The position numbers and the translations under genes were made by a program. A stretch of DNA of 64,000 nt, from assembly GCA_964188305.1 (NCBI GenBank), contig OZ076899.1. One strand, written 5' to 3'. The stretch is from Podarcis bocagei (Eukaryota). The notes beneath the pieces are model-generated. The model did not search any database, had not been told where the DNA came from, and saw only the letters and a program-made list of their open reading frames with translations. Positions 54,901 through 64,000 of this stretch are shown piece by piece; position 1 is the stretch's first letter; every line of letters starts with the position of its first letter.

Positions 54901-57900
54901 ACAAAAATGCTTTCAGTAGACGTCAAAAAGAGTAGAATGAAGGCGCCTGCCTGATATCATCACACTAGAAGATCCATTTATTATAAATGCAGAACGGGTA
55001 TTATATGGCACTTGGAACAGTGCCAATTCTGCAGATGGAAGTGGTTGAGTGAGCATATCTGGGTTAAGGCAGTCTCACAGGTAAATTATTAAGGGCTTTG
55101 CATACTAATAGTAACCTTTTGAACTTGTCTCGGTAGCAAATCAGCAACCAGTACAGATCTCTGAGCATGGGTGCTATATGCTGACAAGTTTTTGCTCCTT
55201 TCAGCAATCAAGCTGCAGCATTCTGCGCTAACTTCAGCTTCCAGATCAGATGCAAGGGAAGCCCCATATAGAGCGCACTACAGTAATCCAGTCTTGAAGC
55301 AACCAGTACATGAATTACAGTAACTGGGTGTCTCTGGCCAAGCTGATGGGCTGTTATGACGCTTTCGATGTCTGTCAGCAACTAAGCGCTGAGCATCACT
55401 CCCCACCACTTCATTTGCCCCCCATGCCTTCCCAGCACCCCCTACCAGAAGCAGCAGTGGGCAGCCCCCGAGTCAGTCACAGGCCTACCTGACATAGTCC
55501 TCGCAGAGCCGGTGGAAATTCTCCCGCTCCCCGTCACACTTCAGGTCCCCATAGAGCTTGCTGAGGAGGACGGCTGCGCTCATGAGGGTGTTCTCTGTCA
55601 CCCGCAGGCCCCCGGGGCTGTGGCTCACTGTGCCCCCCACCTCCAGGATCTGCTTGAGACCTAGTGAGGACAGACATGCTCACTGGCGCTGGCGAGGGAC
55701 CCAGGCCAGGAAGAGGAGGGGCTCAGGAATGGGCTAGACGTACCCTGGTCAATGACCCAGAGGGTCAGGCAGTTGTTGGGGTCCTTCAGCGACTTCCGGG
55801 GCACCACACTGATCAGCAGGTTGAGGATGCTGTCCCGGCCATAGGAGGAAATGCTCTCCCGGGTCAGGGCTTCCAGCAGCTGCTTGAGGAGCAATTTCAG
55901 CTCTTTGGATGTATCTACAGGAGCAGAATCAGAGTTGAGGAGGTCTGAGCCTCCTCTCTCCAGGCCAGCATTCGCAGCCCAGCTCCACCCAAGGCATCAG
56001 CACGAAGATGAGCTTGGCACGACACAAAGTGGATGCTGAGCCCAGCAGGGAGGCACCCAAGAGACTCACCCAGGACCACAGCTTCCTCCTTGCCACGCAC
56101 ATCCCTCTGCAGCCCCTCCTTGAGGGCATCAAACATAACCTGCAGCAGGCTGTAGGTTGCCAGCGAGACTTGCTCGTCCTCCATCTCTAGGATAGCAAAG
56201 AGGCGCTGGGGCCCCAGCTCAGCCAGGATCACTGCAGTCTGAAAGAAGGGCAGCATCCACTGAGACTTGGGGAGGAATCCAGGCCTGTCTCTCAAGAACC
56301 AGTTACCTCCCCCACATAGCTCAGAGCAGAGCTGGATACCTGCCTAGTAGGCAACTCCACAAGTGCAACTGTGGCTTGTCAGTAGGAACTCTGAGGACCC
56401 ATAAACCTACCCAAGGAGACAGAGTTCAAGGGGGGGTTTTTTATACTAGAGGAATATCTAGGTTATCTTGCAGAATGTATTCAACAGTCTTGCTAGCCCT
56501 CTGTCCACCACGGGAAGTGATCATAGACTTGTAGGGTCGGAAGGGACCCAATGAGCCTTTCAGTTCAACCCTCTGAAATGCAGGAATCACAGCTAAAGTA
56601 TCCCTGACAGAGGCCATCCAAACTCTGCTTTAAAACCTCCAATAAAGGAGAGTCCACCACTTGGAGGGTGTCCATTCCAAGAGGCTGAACAACATCAGGC
56701 CCTGCAGTACCCCACTTGTCACTGGACAAGGAACTGTTGGGGAGCACTCTTGGTGAACCACTGGTGGTTAGCCAGACTCCAGCAAATAGGAAGCCCGAGG
56801 TTTCCTCTCAACACTGGAGCAGCAGAGAGGGAGGGGTGATTCCATCCCCTTCCCCAGCCTGAAGCATGGGCGGAAACTCAAGTCTGTGCCTGCCAGGTGG
56901 ATGGTGTTGCAACCTATAAGCAGGTGCAGAGGCAGAGAAAGCTCGGGTGCCTCTGCAGCCCCTCCCTGGCTCTGTGCTGGAGGGGGACAGAAGAGACCAC
57001 TTGGTTTGCCTCTGACCTCCTGAGGCATTTCAAAGATGCAGTACAAGGTCAGGGACAAGTTCCAGGCACACACACCCTCAGAGAAGTGGCATGCCCTTGA
57101 AGCAACAGGTTCTGGAGAGAGTTTTATGCATAACCTGTCAGCAAATGGACTGAACCTGTTACCGCCCCCCCCCAAAAAAAAAGAGTGAAGAAGCTTTCAT
57201 CTTAAAAAGTGGACATACCCGAGAACGATGCCCACTGCAAAGGCCAGTGAGGGTTCGCACAGCTGCTAGCACCGTGTCTGCCCGACCTGTATCCAGCAGC
57301 TGTAGCAGGAGGCGCACTCCGTCATTCTGGAAAATCTTCTCAGCACCAGGCTCCTCGCGAGCCAAAACAATCAAATTCTGAGCTGCCTGGACAGGAGAAG
57401 AGCCAGTTAGCTGGACAAAGGGACTCGCTTTAACCGCTCCCCATCAGGCCACACAGCTGTTGGAGGGGCACACCCAGAATTTAGAGCTGGAGAGGTTTGG
57501 AGATTCTGGCCCATAATAATTCCATTGTCCTTGCTTCTCTAAGAGCCATGGGGGTGGGGATCTCCTCCTTGGGCAGAGCTGGGAAGCCTGCAGAGTCCCT
57601 CCAGGTGCTGCTGCACTGTAACGCCCATCAACATTAGGATGACTTGATGTTATGAACCGCCCTGTGATTGTTGGATGAAGGGCGGTATACAAATCCCATG
57701 AGACAGAATGAATCACTCTAGACTGAGACTGATCGTATTAAAATAAGCACCACCCTAATATATTCTGGTTTTGTCAGTCACGGAAAAGGAAGTTACGGTA
57801 CAATGACTCAAAGTCCTCCTCCCTTCCTCCCTCAGGTATCCTGATCCAGGCATCAGAAACCCTCCCTCTGGCTTTTGCCTACAGGCAAATTTGGAAATGC

Positions 57901-59524
57901 AAAACTTGCATTTTGAAATAGAAAACAGAATTGGAGACTGCCTAATTCTACAACTGCATCCCATATATGTACAGCTGCAGCACACCTAAAATTGCTCTTC
58001 ATCAGGGCACATCACACCTCCTACCTGCTTGCTGATTAGAGGGGTACCTTTTGTTTCTTGTCCAGATCTTTTTCTTCAGGGTCCAGCAGCAACTTAAACA
58101 TCTGCTCCACTTTGGAGTCTGTGCGGGACATGGCTGTCATCTGAAACAAACAGGCAGTTGGTGAGAAACCCCACAGTCGTACTTCAGAAGCCCAGTACAC
58201 ACCTGAAGCCCAGAATCCTTCCTGGTTGGAGAGCTAGGCTGCCCCACAAGGGAGGCGCCTACCCTGGCAATGCCCACACTCCCCCAATGCTTCTCCTACC
58301 TTCTCATGCATGCTGCTGCCAAGGTTGCGCAGAGCCTCCTGGAAGGCCTTGTTCTTGGGCTCCAGGCTCACACACCTCTGCAGGTCCAGGAGGGCCTGGT
58401 CGAAGCGGCCCAGTTTCTGCCGGGCTTGGCTGCGCCGGAAGAGGCTCTTCACATCATGCCCATCAGCTTCTATAGCTGCAAACAGGCAAGAAAGTATTAA
58501 GAGGCAGCAAAGAGAAAAAAGGCAGCTTCTGCAGAGAAAGAGACTTTTGGAAGGAGAGTAATCCCCCACCCCACCACACCCCTTGCAGCTCACCTTTAGA
58601 AGCGTCCAGTTCTGCCTGGACATAGTCCTCCTGCAAAAGAAGCAGAATGCCAGAGAGGCATTGGTGAAAGGAGATGTAAGCGGGGGAGCAGGGCGGGGGA
58701 GTGAGGGGAGAAGAAAATACTCAAGAGGAGCTCAGGCTGAAAATGACAGCCCTGACCACCTTTCTGGGGGACATCTGTCAAATCCTAAATTCTCTGCAGG
58801 TTACAGGAGGAGAAGGAGGAGGCAAGGCATCAGGCTGGCCTCTCACTATATGGCCACTGTCTTCTCAGTCCGTCATAGCCAGACAGCCAGGCCCGAGGGC
58901 TCCCCTTGACTGTGCATAAAGGCACCTCAGCTTCTAAGGAGCAGCAGGGTGAAAAGAAGTCCACCTAAAGGGGCTCAGCACAGTTAAATGAGAGATGCAC
59001 AGAAACGTTGACACTGGGGGCAAAGGGAAGCTCTGTGGCCATTTAGGGGAAAACACACACACAATGCCTGCTACCTTCTGATGCGTACTACGTCACTTGA
59101 GAATTTTGAGAAGAAAAGACAATAATCCCTTAGAATCTCCCCAGGAGTGTCCAACTTTTCTCCTCCTGCAGAAGAGAGCGGCAGGTAGGCAGGCTGGCAC
59201 TGCCCCTTGGGGGGCTCCCATAACTCAGGCAACCCTCCCGCTTTCCCCACTTCCCCACTCACCAGCTTGAGGTGGCAGGCGGCGCGGTTGCGGTGGAGGA
59301 CAGCGCGGTGCGGGTCGGGCTCCTCGCCATCCCCAGGGCAGAGGCTGAGGGCCCGGGTGTAAGCGGCCAGCGCCTCCTCATAGCGGCCTGTCTGGAAGAG
59401 CTCGTTGCCCTCCCGGCGGAGCTCCGGGACCTGCGGAGATAAGAGGGGCGGGGTGGATGAGCGATTCGGTTTGGGGGTCAGCTGGGCTCCCACCGCCCAC
59501 CCCACTCACCGCCGTCTCCTCCAT
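48976..59524 (-). CDS. UNC45A: Myosin co-chaperone UNC-45A (TPR + central + UCS), 20 exons, 941 aa
   Basis: Exons (minus) 59524-59510, 59430-59263, 58630-58594, 58475-58300, 58140-58048, 57386-57219, 56238-56070, 55914-55744, 55660-55489, 54565-54265, 53305-53211, 52929-52788, 51242-51102, 50817-50690, 50383-50317, 50202-50089, 49986-49871, 49745-49628, 49548-49393, 49254-48976 (2826 nt). Motifs: [69 protein letters not shown]. Confidence 0.96.
52300..52615 (+). mobile_element. CR1 LINE 3' fragment; shorter related tails at ~17085-17180(+) and ~56520-56680(-)
   Basis: AAACATTAGGAAGAAC..TGGAACAGACT..CCTGCATTGCAGGGGGTTGGACTAGATGACCCT..TTCCAACTCTACAATTCTA tail. Confidence 0.75.
53392..54187 (+). 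mobile_element. 5'-truncated L1-clade (L1/Tx1-like) LINE in UNC45A intron 10, 15-bp TSD
   Basis: ORF2 C-terminus with CCHC knuckle ([17 protein letters not shown]), broken by a single stop at 53608-53610. TSD AAGAGGAACAGTGTT at 53377-53391 and 54188-54202; A-rich tail. Confidence 0.85.
54730..55330 (-). mobile_element. L2-clade LINE 3' fragment
   Basis: Minus strand near 55300-55210 translates [29 protein letters not shown], the typical post-RT L2 motif; AT-rich tail near 54740. Confidence 0.7.
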
Positions 59525-61154
59525 GGCGCGCTCTAGTGACGCCACGCGAGCGCGACAGCCGCTCCCTAACCGACCCACGTGCTGGCAGCGCCTCCCTTGG
59601 AGCGCCCAGCGGAGAAGAGACCGGGCGGCCCGGGAGCGGAGCTGCTCCACCTCCCGCCGCGCCCGCCCCGCGTGCCTTCTTGCCGGCTTCCTGTTTCTTG
59701 CAGGGGCACCTCCCGAGGATTCGTCGGTGGAGGAGGCGGTGGAAGCTGCGCTGGTGAAGGCGGTAGAAGTGAAGGAAGTCGACGGTCATGAGGGCCAGGA
59801 CGAGGCAGCCGTAGAGCCCCACGCCCAACAGCGGCCCCAGCGGGCTCCTGTGGAGGGAAAGCGGGCTCAGACGGAAGGACGGGAGGAAGAGGGGAACCCC
59901 CAACACCCCTCTCGCCCCCCCGTCCCCCCACAAGGGCATCTCACCGGGGCGCGGCTGGCGGAGCAGAAGCCGAGGCATTGCCGCGGAGCCTCTCAAATTC
60001 GGGCCGTGGGCAGCAGGACTTGAAGCGGCGAGAGGCGGCAGGCAGGCAGCAGTAGGCGTGGGTCGGGGGGTCGGTGAGGCGTGGGCAGTAGAAGCCGGCG
60101 TGGTGGAGCCCGGCGGGGTCCCGGTAGCCCTCGCAAAGGTGCACGTTTTGGGTACCAGCTGGAAAGAGGAAGCGATTGGAACAAGCTGGGTGCTCGGGGG
60201 GCTGCCCTCCCTGCCGGGGCTCGCGGGAGAATCGCGGGGAGGGGGGAGGATACTGCCGCTCCAGCCCTGCTGAAAGCCCATACAGGAGGACCCCGGGGAG
60301 GGGGCAGGCAGGCCCAGGACTGCCGTTTCAGCGTCTCTTCGGTCGCCTGGCTATAGAGTGGTTGGCAGTCCTGTGGAAGCGGGCTGAACAGCGAGGGAAA
60401 GTATCCTAATAAAAAAGGCTGCAAAGTCGCGGACACTTCTGCTAGAGGAGAACCACTTCCTGCCCTGAGCCAGATCAGACCTCAGACAACCAGTACCCAG
60501 GGTCCAGGGACATTTGTTTCCCATAAAGAGTAAAGCCAAACCCACTAAAGACTGAAAGTGACTGGTTCTGTGCTAAGGGATTTGAGGGTACCCAGTTCCG
60601 ATCAGACAGATCTGCATTGGCAACGCACAGAAGTCTGTCTGGTGAAGTTGTCCTTGGGTTGGAAGATGCAAGGAGCTGGGAAAGGTTTTCCTCATACTGA
60701 CTGGGAAACTGAGCAGAGCACTTGCAGGCAAACTGGCCTATGAACACAAGCTTAACTCTCTGTCTCAAACACATTCATGCACGCACTCCAATTGTCATGC
60801 ACACAAACACAGGCCCATCATTCCTTGTCAACATGCTTGGATCCTAGGTTGATTCCTTCCTTCAGCTGGTGGGACACCCCAGAGCAAGTGGCACCCTGCA
60901 AACAGGGCTTTTACTTAGCTCTAGGGTGGCCCTGAAACCCCTGAGAGTGAGAGTCTTGCTCGAAGCAGATCTGCACATGGGCTGAGAAGCCCCTGGGAGA
61001 CTATAGAGACTGCAATTTCAAAGTGTGGGTTTGGCACGGCAAGTTGGAGCTCCTGGGGGGCTACTGTGCTGGTGGGGAAGGGAGAGAAGGGAGACCAGAT
61101 GCAGGTACCTGTCCTGAGAAAGGCCAGCAGCAGCAGGCAGGGCAAGAGCAGCAT
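59478..61154 (-). CDS. Shisa-like (SHISAL1/KIAA1644-related) single-pass membrane protein, 3 exons, 209 aa, overlapping the UNC45A start
   Basis: Exon 1 61154-61109 ([15 protein letters not shown], signal peptide, donor ACAG|GTACC); exon 2 60158-59945 (acceptor TTCCTCTTTCCAG; [44 protein letters not shown]; donor CG|GTGAGA); exon 3 59847-59478 (acceptor TTTCCCTCCACAG; [28 protein letters not shown], then a basic tail). Phases 1 and 2 join exactly; total 630 nt. Confidence 0.8.
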
Positions 61155-64000
61155 CTTCCCGGCAGCGGCAGCAGTGTTGAAGGCTGAGGCAGCACTGATT
61201 GTCTCCTCCTAGGGAGGGAAAGCAAAGAAACCACACAGAGCTGCCTGGCTCCCGCATCCATTACCGGGTACCATCAAGCACCTCCCTGCGCCATTAGGCC
61301 AGGCTGCACTTAACGGCTTGCCTCTGCAGGGACCTTGCCAAGCTGGGGGCAGGGAAGATCCATTAGGGAAGCGACCTGGCTAATGGGAGGGGCCAGAGTT
61401 TGGCCTAGTAGTGGGGAGAAACGATGTGGTCAGGAGCCTCCCCAGCGGGGTCTTCAGCTCAGGAGAAAGGCCCAGGGGGCTTTTTACGCCAAGGCAGGCC
61501 TCCACTCAGAATCCAGGCACCTGCTGTGTTCAACATCAGGAAAGACAGACAAGCACTTTCTGGGCAGCATCCCATATTGGCAGGGGCAGGGGGCAGGCTT
61601 CTACAGAACAAACAGCCAAGAATCCAGGAGCACTTCTCTTGGGTATGGGTTTTACTGGGCTAGATAATATTCATCTACTGTAAGAATGTAAGAAGAGCCT
61701 ACTGGATCTAGCCAGCATCCTGTTTTCACAGTAGCCAACCAGGTGCTGAACCCTAACCCTGTGGGAAACCCCCAAGCTGTAGGCAACAAAAGTTTGCATT
61801 TGGCTTCCTAACAGTGCCACTGGTGTTCTTGGTTGCATTTGTAACACTCAGGGTTTTGTCATTGTCTAGAGCTACACCTTTTGATGAGGGTAACTGATGG
61901 GTCTCAAACCCTCCATGAGTTAAGGACTTTCCCTGCATGTGAAGACAGGCTCCAGCGGATTGAGCGTACGAGACCAGTAGTGGGTCCAACAGTCAGGAGG
62001 CAGTTTCTGCACATGCTGTAGTAGAGGGAGTGAGGGTCAGATGTGGCTCGTCAACCTGGGAAGGTAGCCTACGTAGGAGAAGGAAGACATTGATCCTAAA
62101 CCTCTACTGCCTTGTGGGATATCTTCAGGACAAGAAAAGGAGTAAACCCTACAAAGAATGAATGGCACCTCGTACACTTGCTTCTGGCAACACTTGCAGC
62201 CAAGCTGGTGCCAAATGTTTTGCTTTCCTTTGGACCACATCAGCAAGGCCAAGAGGGTGGTCTTGTCACCTGGGAGATAAGGACCTCTGTATGCACTGCC
62301 CAGGCTTGGGCTCCATGGAAGGTCACTTCAGAGCTACCAATGCAGCGGTTTGACTCTTCAGGAGAGATTATGTGTGGTTCCATTGTCCCGTTTGTGAAAT
62401 GGAACTTCCCCTCCCTCTGTCTGTGTTGTCTCCTAATACTATTCAGAGTGGGGCAGGGATTCTGGAACAGATTTAGGGGGTGCATGGGGAGAAGAAAGGG
62501 AGGAGGGAGCTCTGTGATTAAACCAGAGATTCTCACACTTTGCTGGATGCTGCCCTATAGAATCAAAACATTGATTGTGTCCATTAAAAAAAAATCCATT
62601 ATTGTGAAATTTTGGGACATGAAACATTGGGTCAAACTGAAGAAGTAACTGGATAGAGAATCCCTTTAGACTCATTCCTGGTTATGTTATTTGAACGTTG
62701 TGGAGGGAGCTGCCAAACTGAAGACTGCATTTAAGTGTGAATTATCTACCTGTTGTCTATCACAGATGTGGGTTGCAGAGGGACCTTCTCTGCTCTGAAT
62801 AAGCTGACTGAGAAGGAAGGCAATGGAGGACCACTGCTCAGGCTTTGCACACAGACGGTCCCAGGCTCAATCCCTGGTGGTATCTCCCCCAAAAGGTTTT
62901 GGGCCATAACCACTCCATACTTCATTTCCAGGAGTTCTGCTCAGATCCTCATTTCTCATTGACCGCAATCAGAATTAGATTGCATTAATCATTCATAAAG
63001 CTGGCACAAGTCCTTTCAGAAAGGTTTGTAATTAGGGCTTTGTTTTTTCTCTTAACTGGCCATATTTCTTTTAAGGGTGGGATCTGTGCATGCTTGCCTA
63101 TGTCCTGTCATGCTTCCAGTTAATGATTCAGATGACCTTGCAGTTCTACCTTTTCCACTGCCTGCTACCTGACCTTTTTGTTTTTCCCCTTGAGCTGCTC
63201 CCAGGGATTGAATCTGGGACCTTTCAATGTGCAAAGGCGGTTGCTCTACCCCCAGTTTCCATTCTTTCCTTTTGGAGGTGCATAAAACCCCATGAGGCAC
63301 ATCCTGAGAACTCCCTTACTGCTTTCCCTGCCAGTGGCCTAAGCCCACAGAGCTCCCAGCATGATTTTTTGTAAGGGGTGCCTCTTCACACTTCTTGCAG
63401 GATTGGCCCTTCACTGAGAGCTCCTGCCTTCTGTTTATACTAGGAGTTTAGGGAATAAAGCATGGGATGGGATGGGTGTGGTGTCTCTCACCTTTTGAGC
63501 ACATTTGCAAGGAGAAATGAGTCCTCTTGCCTGTCTACTGACTGGGGCAGGGGAAGCAGGCTTGAGGCCAAGAAGCTGCTAGCTTGCCAGGCACTGCTCC
63601 TTGCAATGAGAGACTGGCTGCTTGACAGGTGCTCCAGTCGACTTAGGAAGCCCTACCTTTGCCCTGCCACCCCTCCTGATCCCCACTTGAGACCCTGCAC
63701 CACAGGTAAGGAAACAACATGTGACCTCTTGCTCCTTCACCCATCCTTCAGGGGCTGCCACCCACCCCACAACGCCTGAGCTCAAAGGTGCCATTCCCAT
63801 CTCAAGCATCAAAAAGCAGCCGCAGCACATGGAACCAGCCTACCTATCACAGCCCAAGCCTCTCCGCAGCTGATGTCCACATCAGTTTGCTCTCCTTCTG
63901 GCCAGAGTCTCTACAAACCCAGGTACAATCTGGTTCTGGCCGCCTTGGTGCCTGCCCCATGAGACACGGATCACTTCCCCTCACAAAGGGAAGCCGCATT

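Follow-up and report, generated by a model that had tools for sequence, protein, structure and literature searches.

A 64,000-nucleotide stretch of the Podarcis bocagei genome (contig OZ076899.1 of assembly GCA_964188305.1; hereafter, the window) carries on its minus strand, pressed against the start of UNC45A, a three-exon gene for a Shisa-like membrane protein. We consider it very likely that this gene is a real and selectively constrained orthologue of shisal1a, which is annotated in other vertebrates as shisa-like-1a. Taken as a whole, the locus is probably best explained by such an orthologue combined with two promoters and read-through into UNC45A; for P. bocagei itself, the DNA of the locus leans modestly towards read-through.

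The predicted open reading frame (ORF) comprises 209 codons plus TGA (630 nt) and is assembled from three exons joined at GT-AG sites in matching phases (Table 1). An earlier sequence-only reading had proposed a 209-residue protein of this composition, with a signal peptide, six cysteines, an NAS sequon, a transmembrane (TM) helix and a basic tail, and its coordinates, splice sites and phases were all confirmed. Exon 1 encodes a hydrophobic stretch fitting a signal peptide, the cysteines fall at residues 24, 40, 52, 53, 64 and 65, and the sequon is at residue 76. Hydropathy has one peak (1.98, strongest 19-mer) at residues 93-112, followed by a basic stretch; this candidate single TM helix is followed by a tail of 94 residues. 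By heuristics only, the signal peptide and the one TM helix after the Cys domain indicate type I topology. Exon 2 by itself gives a Pfam match to Shisa_N (PF13908) with a score of 23 bits (E 8.5e-5), just over the gathering cut-off of 22.

Table 1. Features of the Shisa-like gene and the start of UNC45A in the window (minus-strand features run from higher to lower positions; a slash marks an exon boundary)
Feature	Position	Strand	Details
Promoter-like block	61387-61155	minus	~230 bp directly 5' of exon 1; counterparts L001 975-1192, L011 9765-10000
Exon 1, coding part	61154-61109	minus	ATG and signal peptide; phase-1 donor ACAG/GTACCT
Intron 1	61108-60159	minus	950 nt, GT-AG
Exon 2	60158-59945	minus	six-Cys Shisa_N ectodomain and NAS sequon; acceptor ...TTTCCAG/, donor CCCG/GTGAGA
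Intron 2	59944-59848	minus	97 nt, GT-AG, phase 2
Exon 3	59847-59478	minus	acceptor ...CTCCACAG/; TM helix and tail; TGA at 59480-59478
Exon 3, conserved part	59847-59700	minus	TM helix and juxtamembrane segment; hydropathy peak, relatives alignable
Exon 3, unconserved tail	59699-59478	minus	Arg/Gly/Ala/Pro-rich, ends at TGA
Alternative Shisa-like stop	59380-59378	minus	if UNC45A intron 1 is removed; end of ORF 59378..59650
CpG island	~59200-60400	n/a	covers Shisa-like exons 2-3 and UNC45A exons 1-2; exon 1 lies outside and is CpG-poor
Same-strand coding overlap	59524-59478	minus	47 nt; Shisa-like frame crosses the UNC45A ATG into UNC45A intron 1
UNC45A first coding exon (MEETA)	59524-59510	minus	strong Kozak context GCCATGG; donor GCG/GTGAGT
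UNC45A ATG	59524-59522	minus	exon 1 donor after 59510
UNC45A intron 1	between 59510 and 59430	minus	79 nt
UNC45A TPR exon	59430-59263	minus	tblastn with rodent UNC45A N-terminus matches 59445-59263
Following UNC45A exons	58476-58297, 57389-57198, 56241-56071, 55864-55742	minus	tblastn with rodent UNC45A

Family, orthology and constraint

When 1.84 billion cluster representatives were scanned in full with exon 2 (HMMER, phmmer), 89 homologues emerged at E<=1e-3. Members of the top group share 50-61% identity with exon 2, bear the NCBI names "protein shisa-like-1a", "shisa-like-1" or "uncharacterized LOC", and come from birds, turtles, frogs, caecilians, salamanders, coelacanth, sturgeon, bichir, sharks, vole, pangolin and gray whale. 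A second group, at ~42% identity, is SHISAL1/KIAA1644 proper. All six cysteines can be aligned across the vertebrate relatives, and together with the homologues and the Pfam match they uphold the Shisa-family membership proposed earlier.

The sequence-only reading had also guessed at a paralog of SHISAL1/KIAA1644 rather than SHISAL1 itself, and a maximum-likelihood (ML) tree of 34 proteins separates the two clades accordingly. The window protein falls inside an amniote clade (100/98) nested in a tetrapod shisal1a clade (97/86), with SHISAL1 proper apart (97/99). Because the turtle Caretta carries both genes, shisal1a and SHISAL1 are paralogues. Within the amniote clade, the window protein groups with the snake and mammalian sequences at weak support, probably a long-branch effect.

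A family-profile search listed no squamate member, a result limited by its word-index sensitivity. A profile focused on squamates found an olive python (Liasis olivaceus) "protein shisa-like-1a" and three snake contigs; it also showed that contig L001, the closest relative fetched, is from a snake. In a tree of UNC45A N-termini, the window and L001 group together in a sauropsid lineage apart from birds and turtle, and the window most likely comes from a squamate other than a snake. A word-indexed search of a 5.8-billion-protein collection with the exon 3 region gave no match: the TM helix and tail offer too little length or too much divergence, and the collection lacks the window's own protein. 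The gene had been called hidden, which applies at most to this genome; the accompanying guess that automated pipelines already list it was correct, as "protein shisa-like-1a" is predicted in L. olivaceus, many birds, turtles, frogs and Microtus. Our literature search found no paper on the function of shisal1a, its coupling to UNC45A or the gene pair, and nothing relevant on UNC45A as "bicistronic" or on UNC45A/HDDC3 read-through. Published human and mouse Shisa gene lists hold only Shisa-like 1, 2a and 2b, and no shisa-like-1a (PMC10531659).

Selection was assessed over a core of 92 codons, from HLCEGY to LHFYR. Between the window and a snake, ML that allows for codon frequencies puts the ratio of nonsynonymous to synonymous rates (omega) at 0.28 in the annotated frame (0.18 by YN00) versus 1.03 and 2.32 in the +1 and +2 off-frames. 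NG86 gives 0.74 for this pair; NG86 omegas of 0.74-1.05 among the GC-rich sequences were rejected as biased, because a GC content at third codon positions of 0.86-0.98 compresses synonymous differences and so inflates the ratio. Between python and the other snake, where the synonymous rate (dS) of the core is unsaturated at 0.17, ML and NG86 agree on an omega of 0.14-0.15; the tail of the same pair (28 codons, dS 0.04-0.06) yields 1.0-1.6 by the two methods. These codon comparisons indicate that the ectodomain and TM helix are under frame-specific purifying selection in squamates and that the tail overlapping UNC45A is not constrained as protein. The snake tail is kept as DNA rather than as protein, a pattern to be expected of a segment that also serves as UNC45A promoter or leader, although the segment is short and the test weak.

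Gene order and exon layout are conserved as well. MAN2A2, shisal1a and UNC45A follow one another on one strand in 7/7 loci fetched (Rhea, Cinclus, Athene, Terrapene, Liasis, Microtus and Ascaphus); in the window the UNC45A neighbour is present, and MAN2A2 is not found within the 2.8 kb that remain upstream. Vole (L003) alone has HDDC3 placed between MAN2A2 and the Shisa-like gene; the six non-mammalian loci, from birds, turtle, python and frog (L002, L005, L006, L009, L010 and L011), do not have it there. Three coding exons, for signal peptide, Cys domain, and TM helix plus tail, meet at the same junctions in Microtus, Cinclus, Rhea and Ascaphus, with intron 1 at the same protein position in all four. 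The intron 2 junction is also used in snakes (introns of 86 and 128 nt), vole, dipper and frog, and signal-peptide-like first exons occur in python, snake L001, turtles and birds.

Snakes have collapsed intron 1 to ~66-87 nt that are in frame and free of stops (L001 1239-1312; L011 10047-10135). Python keeps the exon 1 donor in CAG/GTACC...TTGCAG/, so that splicing is still possible and would yield a window-like ...LLQP/AQNAHLCEGY; in L001 the donor is GC with no matching acceptor, and the stretch seems to have been exonised. An alignment of four rows mixing exon 2 and exon 3 pieces was discarded, as the pieces were misaligned.

Beyond the TM helix, conservation fades quickly. The juxtamembrane segment can be aligned with turtle CRLNQRRFYSLLSSSRLGK and frog YRLNKATFYITLSHSRFGK, and nothing beyond it can. 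In Rhea (L002 11200-13200), the segment between TM helix and UNC45A has grown by GC-rich tandem repeats of the PRSPAPRAERPP type, and in five turtle proteins (P0116, P0120, P0139, P0144 and P0166) by GC-rich tandem repeats of the RPGPARGGTQRQELPTA type, leaving tails of very unequal length in proteins of 188-367 residues. Among amphibian shisal1a proteins (P0013, P0016, P0113 and P0115), those of frogs share a terminal motif, RPLEG[HN]V or something close to it (RPLEANV, for instance), a possible PDZ-type ligand that amniotes do not have; caecilians and a newt share the tail motif DIKCE[ATK], also lost in amniotes. The loss of these amphibian tail ends is consistent with amniotes having lost the original 3' part of the gene when it was pressed against UNC45A.

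The junction with UNC45A and probable transcription across it

The last Shisa-like exon runs into UNC45A without a spacer. Only the splice from the first UNC45A coding exon brings an ATG into frame with the TPR exon, because the in-frame stretch upstream has none; the sequence-only reading had the start and the TPR exon right and placed the TPR boundary one base off. It had also described exon 3 as lying in the UNC45A CpG island and crossing the ATG at 59524 out of frame (CAT GGA GGA GAC) before stopping at 59478 or, with UNC45A intron 1 spliced, at 59378, and we find exactly this. Between the Shisa-like stop and the UNC45A start codon there are -47 nt here (an overlap), 17 nt in both python and the L001 snake, 222 nt in vole, 334 nt in dipper (Cinclus), 1651 nt of repeat-rich, 81% GC sequence in Rhea, and 1285 nt of AT-rich sequence with several AATAAA/ATTAAA hexamers in the frog Ascaphus. 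The orthologue group is already predicted in many genomes, including that of a snake with the same 17-nt arrangement.

No AATAAA or ATTAAA lies between the two codons in any amniote locus examined. On the minus strand of the window, neither hexamer occurs for ~4.5 kb past the stop, in agreement with the earlier statement that none is seen for several kb; the nearest AATAAA are at 54982 and 54742 and the nearest ATTAAA at ~54166 and 53427. What the amniotes have in common is thus the absence of a terminator and, mostly, of a spacer; in all those examined, the Shisa-like gene and the UNC45A start share one CpG island, pressed together or overlapping. The 47-nt overlap itself comes from a lineage-specific lengthening of the tail and is probably incidental, because the tail is neither conserved nor constrained as protein.

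Two promoters can be proposed. The CpG island has a GC content of 0.68-0.70 and a CpG observed/expected ratio of 0.58-0.89, with flanking 200-bp bins at <=0.35 in all but two, and presumably holds UNC45A's own promoter. A second candidate lies directly upstream of exon 1, where the block at 61155-61387 is the sole upstream sequence conserved with python (69% over 297 nt). In a three-squamate alignment, this block holds four TAAT-core motifs, CCATTAG, CTAATGGATC, CCTAATGG and TAATGGATG, of which three are invariant; the CCTAATGG site (CCTAAT[G/A]G) differs at one base in python. TAATGG/CCATTA thus occurs at four sites within ~130 bp versus 0.39 per kb across the window. TAATGG is the classic core site of Q50 homeodomains. 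Conservation of the block suggests a dedicated promoter upstream of exon 1, and its TAATGG sites hint at tissue-specific control. Elsewhere, Rhea and Cinclus each have one TAATGG some 100 bp 5' of the ATG, Ascaphus has one at -35, and vole has none.

Transcript evidence comes from rodents. A Logan contig of a vole-like rodent (L004, one run) carries a Shisa-like ORF, intact at 165 residues, followed by the UNC45A ORF, and contigs of another rodent (L007 and L008, two runs) have the two ORFs in the same order. These contigs derive from spliced RNA, because introns present in the vole genome are missing from them and they are joined at canonical plus-strand sites. In both rodents, a single exon comprises Shisa-like exon 3 together with UNC45A exon 1. 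The locus is therefore transcribed continuously in these rodents, with Shisa-like exons spliced in the same RNA population as UNC45A exons. In the second rodent, the ORF (L007 197-799; L008 33-635) is frameshifted just after the Cys domain (EFEVL/VPGQSV... versus EFEALYQVNLS..., the slash here marking the frameshift) and the TM helix is lost, which looks like ORF decay with retention of the exons in UNC45A transcripts. The first 125 nt of L007 map in plus orientation inside the vole HDDC3 gene body (L003 6998-7128), suggesting a distal 5' exon of the read-through transcript that would be antisense to HDDC3.

Read-through into UNC45A, part of the sequence-only reading, is supported indirectly, by the spliced contigs of two rodents with both ORFs and by the 17-nt snake spacing. 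In P. bocagei, the CpG-poor, TAAT-rich upstream promoter would produce a transcript of exons 1-3 continuing into UNC45A, as a bicistronic-type or 5'-extended mRNA, and most UNC45A mRNA, of the ordinary form, would start in the CpG island within the gene. The last Shisa-like coding exon would be the exon bearing the UNC45A start codon. Ribosomes translating the 209-codon ORF would pass the UNC45A ATG, so that such mRNAs would yield little UNC45A. The sequence-only reading had raised the further idea that the upstream promoter may suppress UNC45A initiation or transcription. The putative window mRNA has only two ATGs between the Shisa-like and UNC45A start codons, a count that is uninformative by itself. 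The upstream product would be a type I single-pass protein with a cleavable signal peptide, a six-Cys ectodomain, one N-glycosylation site, a TM helix and a short conserved juxtamembrane segment. Analogy with other Shisa proteins makes it most likely a small transmembrane adaptor that would bind other membrane proteins via its ectodomain and TM helix and alter their trafficking or stability.

Published gene models at this locus are inconsistent. The fin-whale model, a prediction only, fuses the Shisa-like protein with UNC45A into 993 residues, and Ensembl/UniProt files the owl family protein under "Unc-45 myosin chaperone A". In box turtle (L009 17214-22213) and burrowing owl (L010 9363-9412), assembly gaps fall exactly in the GC-rich sequence that separates Shisa-like exon 3 from the UNC45A TPR exon. 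There, the Shisa-like models take over parts of UNC45A, the TPR exon in turtle and later exons in owl, and both UNC45A models are left truncated at 808 residues. We rejected these Terrapene and Athene extensions as evidence of read-through in sauropsids, as both bridge runs of N. The arrangement explains such fused Shisa-UNC45A predictions, UNC45A models lacking the TPR exon, and a Shisa-like protein named UNC45A.

Alternative explanations and evolution of the locus

Several points weigh against an expressed orthologue that reads through into UNC45A. The Pfam Shisa_N score of exon 2 is barely over threshold, and the NG86 omega of 0.74 between window and snake, with a nonsynonymous rate (dN) of ~0.3, describes a fast-evolving protein. 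In a de Bruijn graph, two overlapping transcripts of one strand can end up in a single contig; the rodent contigs therefore establish continuous transcription and shared exons rather than single molecules, and the run-on Terrapene and Athene models carry no weight given their assembly gaps. A stop codon far upstream of many exon junctions normally triggers nonsense-mediated decay (NMD), which argues against an abundant bicistronic mRNA. Finally, intron 1 or 2 of UNC45A may hold a non-canonical poly(A) site.

Such a site would suit a locus of two overlapping independent genes, in which the Shisa-like mRNA is polyadenylated not far past its stop, at a non-canonical or intronic site (UNC45A intron 1-2 or further), without taking in UNC45A coding exons, and UNC45A uses a CpG-island promoter of its own inside the Shisa-like gene. 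The CpG island, centred as it is on the UNC45A start, points to a promoter dedicated to that gene, NCBI annotates two separate genes in python, birds and vole, an early 3' end would be favoured by escape from NMD, and weak variant hexamers do lie downstream (AAGAAA at 58076 and 58059, AATATA at 57764). We nonetheless think this arrangement rather unlikely, given the ~4.5 kb without AATAAA/ATTAAA and the rodent contigs from three runs that splice Shisa exons onward to UNC45A exons. An improbable alternative treats the exons as a mere 5' leader of a distal-promoter UNC45A transcript, with the ORF at most a regulatory upstream ORF, or a decaying relic without protein function in this lineage. The frameshifted rodent, which keeps the exons in UNC45A transcripts after losing the TM helix, fits this, as do the human and mouse gene lists without shisa-like-1a (PMC10531659) and the high dN versus snake. 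It sits poorly with a squamate omega of 0.14-0.28 on the ectodomain and TM helix versus >=1.0 off-frame, and with the six cysteines, sequon position, splice sites and ORF, all of which the window, the two snakes, birds and turtles have kept intact. The idea that the ORF arose by chance in a GC-rich CpG island, where few stop codons occur, and that its splice sites are fortuitous is effectively refuted: a region of ~69% GC with several long overlapping ORFs on both strands, and the marginal Pfam score, would invite the suspicion, but orthologues with the same exon layout and neighbours extend from sharks to mammals, constraint is frame-specific, and exon 1 and the upstream block are conserved.

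Under the favoured layout, a shisal1a orthologue with two promoters and read-through, the loci can be ordered into a modestly interesting series: a frog spacer with poly(A) signals, fusion of transcription units in amniotes, and ORF decay with exon retention in one rodent. We speculate, tentatively, that shisal1a lost its own 3' end and spacer in the amniote ancestor and has since existed only as the upstream cistron of shisal1a-UNC45A read-through mRNAs made from a promoter with homeodomain-type sites, coupling tissue-specific production of the adaptor to local re-programming of UNC45A, and that mammals losing the ORF keep its exons as a UNC45A 5' leader. If so, the re-programming would consist of translational dampening or NMD, and the gene would have been absorbed into its neighbour's untranslated region in those mammals.

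With the window, shisa-like-1a gains a squamate member; this vertebrate membrane-protein gene is ancient and occurs from sharks to some mammals. The locus offers a tractable natural case of how same-strand neighbours without a spacer are transcribed and translated, and bears on whether an upstream cistron tunes a housekeeping chaperone and whether a dying gene is recycled as its neighbour's 5' leader.

Comparison with known systems

The closest comparison is with the shisa-like-1a group, exemplified by the proteins of Liasis olivaceus (171 residues), Cinclus cinclus (XP_062357146.1), Rhea pennata (XP_062439974.1), Ascaphus truei (XP_075431593.1) and Microtus ochrogaster (XP_026640037.1). The window protein shares with them the signal peptide, six-Cys Shisa_N domain, N-x-S sequon, TM helix and juxtamembrane motif HF[YC]R, as well as exon junction positions, a site directly upstream of UNC45A on the same strand and a place in the amniote clade. 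It differs in its tail, which is longer (94 residues after the TM helix versus 29 in python) and unrelated in sequence, and the window is the only locus examined whose ORF extends past the UNC45A ATG. Its intron 1 of 950 nt also contrasts with the short in-frame remnant retained in snakes.

Members of the Shisa family have a signal peptide, an N-terminal Cys-rich domain, a single TM helix and a cytoplasmic tail (PMC10531659). SHISAL1/KIAA1644 has the same architecture as the window protein and the motif C-E-x-Y-x-D-x-x-G-x-x-H-x-G-F-x-C-P-R-L-x-D...Y-C-C...K-x-C-C; it carries a very conserved 29-residue signature that is not present in the window protein, and it adjoins RTL6/PRR5, not UNC45A (10.1101/2021.12.29.474483). 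The Shisa1-9 adaptors, which act in retention of Wnt and FGF receptors or as auxiliary subunits of AMPA receptors (CKAMPs), have a common domain layout with the window protein, but an eight-Cys pattern rather than six cysteines. Their Pro-rich tails typically bear a PY ([LP]PxY) or PDZ-binding motif (PMC10531659). Neither is found here: [LP]PxY is absent from the window protein and eight relatives (seven shisal1a, one SHISAL1), and the C-terminus of the window protein, WEPS, is not a class I PDZ ligand. The absence of both motifs sets the protein apart from Shisa1-9, not from the Shisa-like subgroup.

Vertebrate bicistronic or read-through pairs include CERS1/LASS1-GDF1, SNURF-SNRPN and conjoined genes. 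As in those pairs, two unrelated same-strand ORFs without an intervening terminator are found on one spliced RNA contig in rodents. Unlike those pairs, the downstream gene, UNC45A, apparently has its own CpG-island promoter inside the upstream gene, and in the window the two ORFs overlap out of frame.

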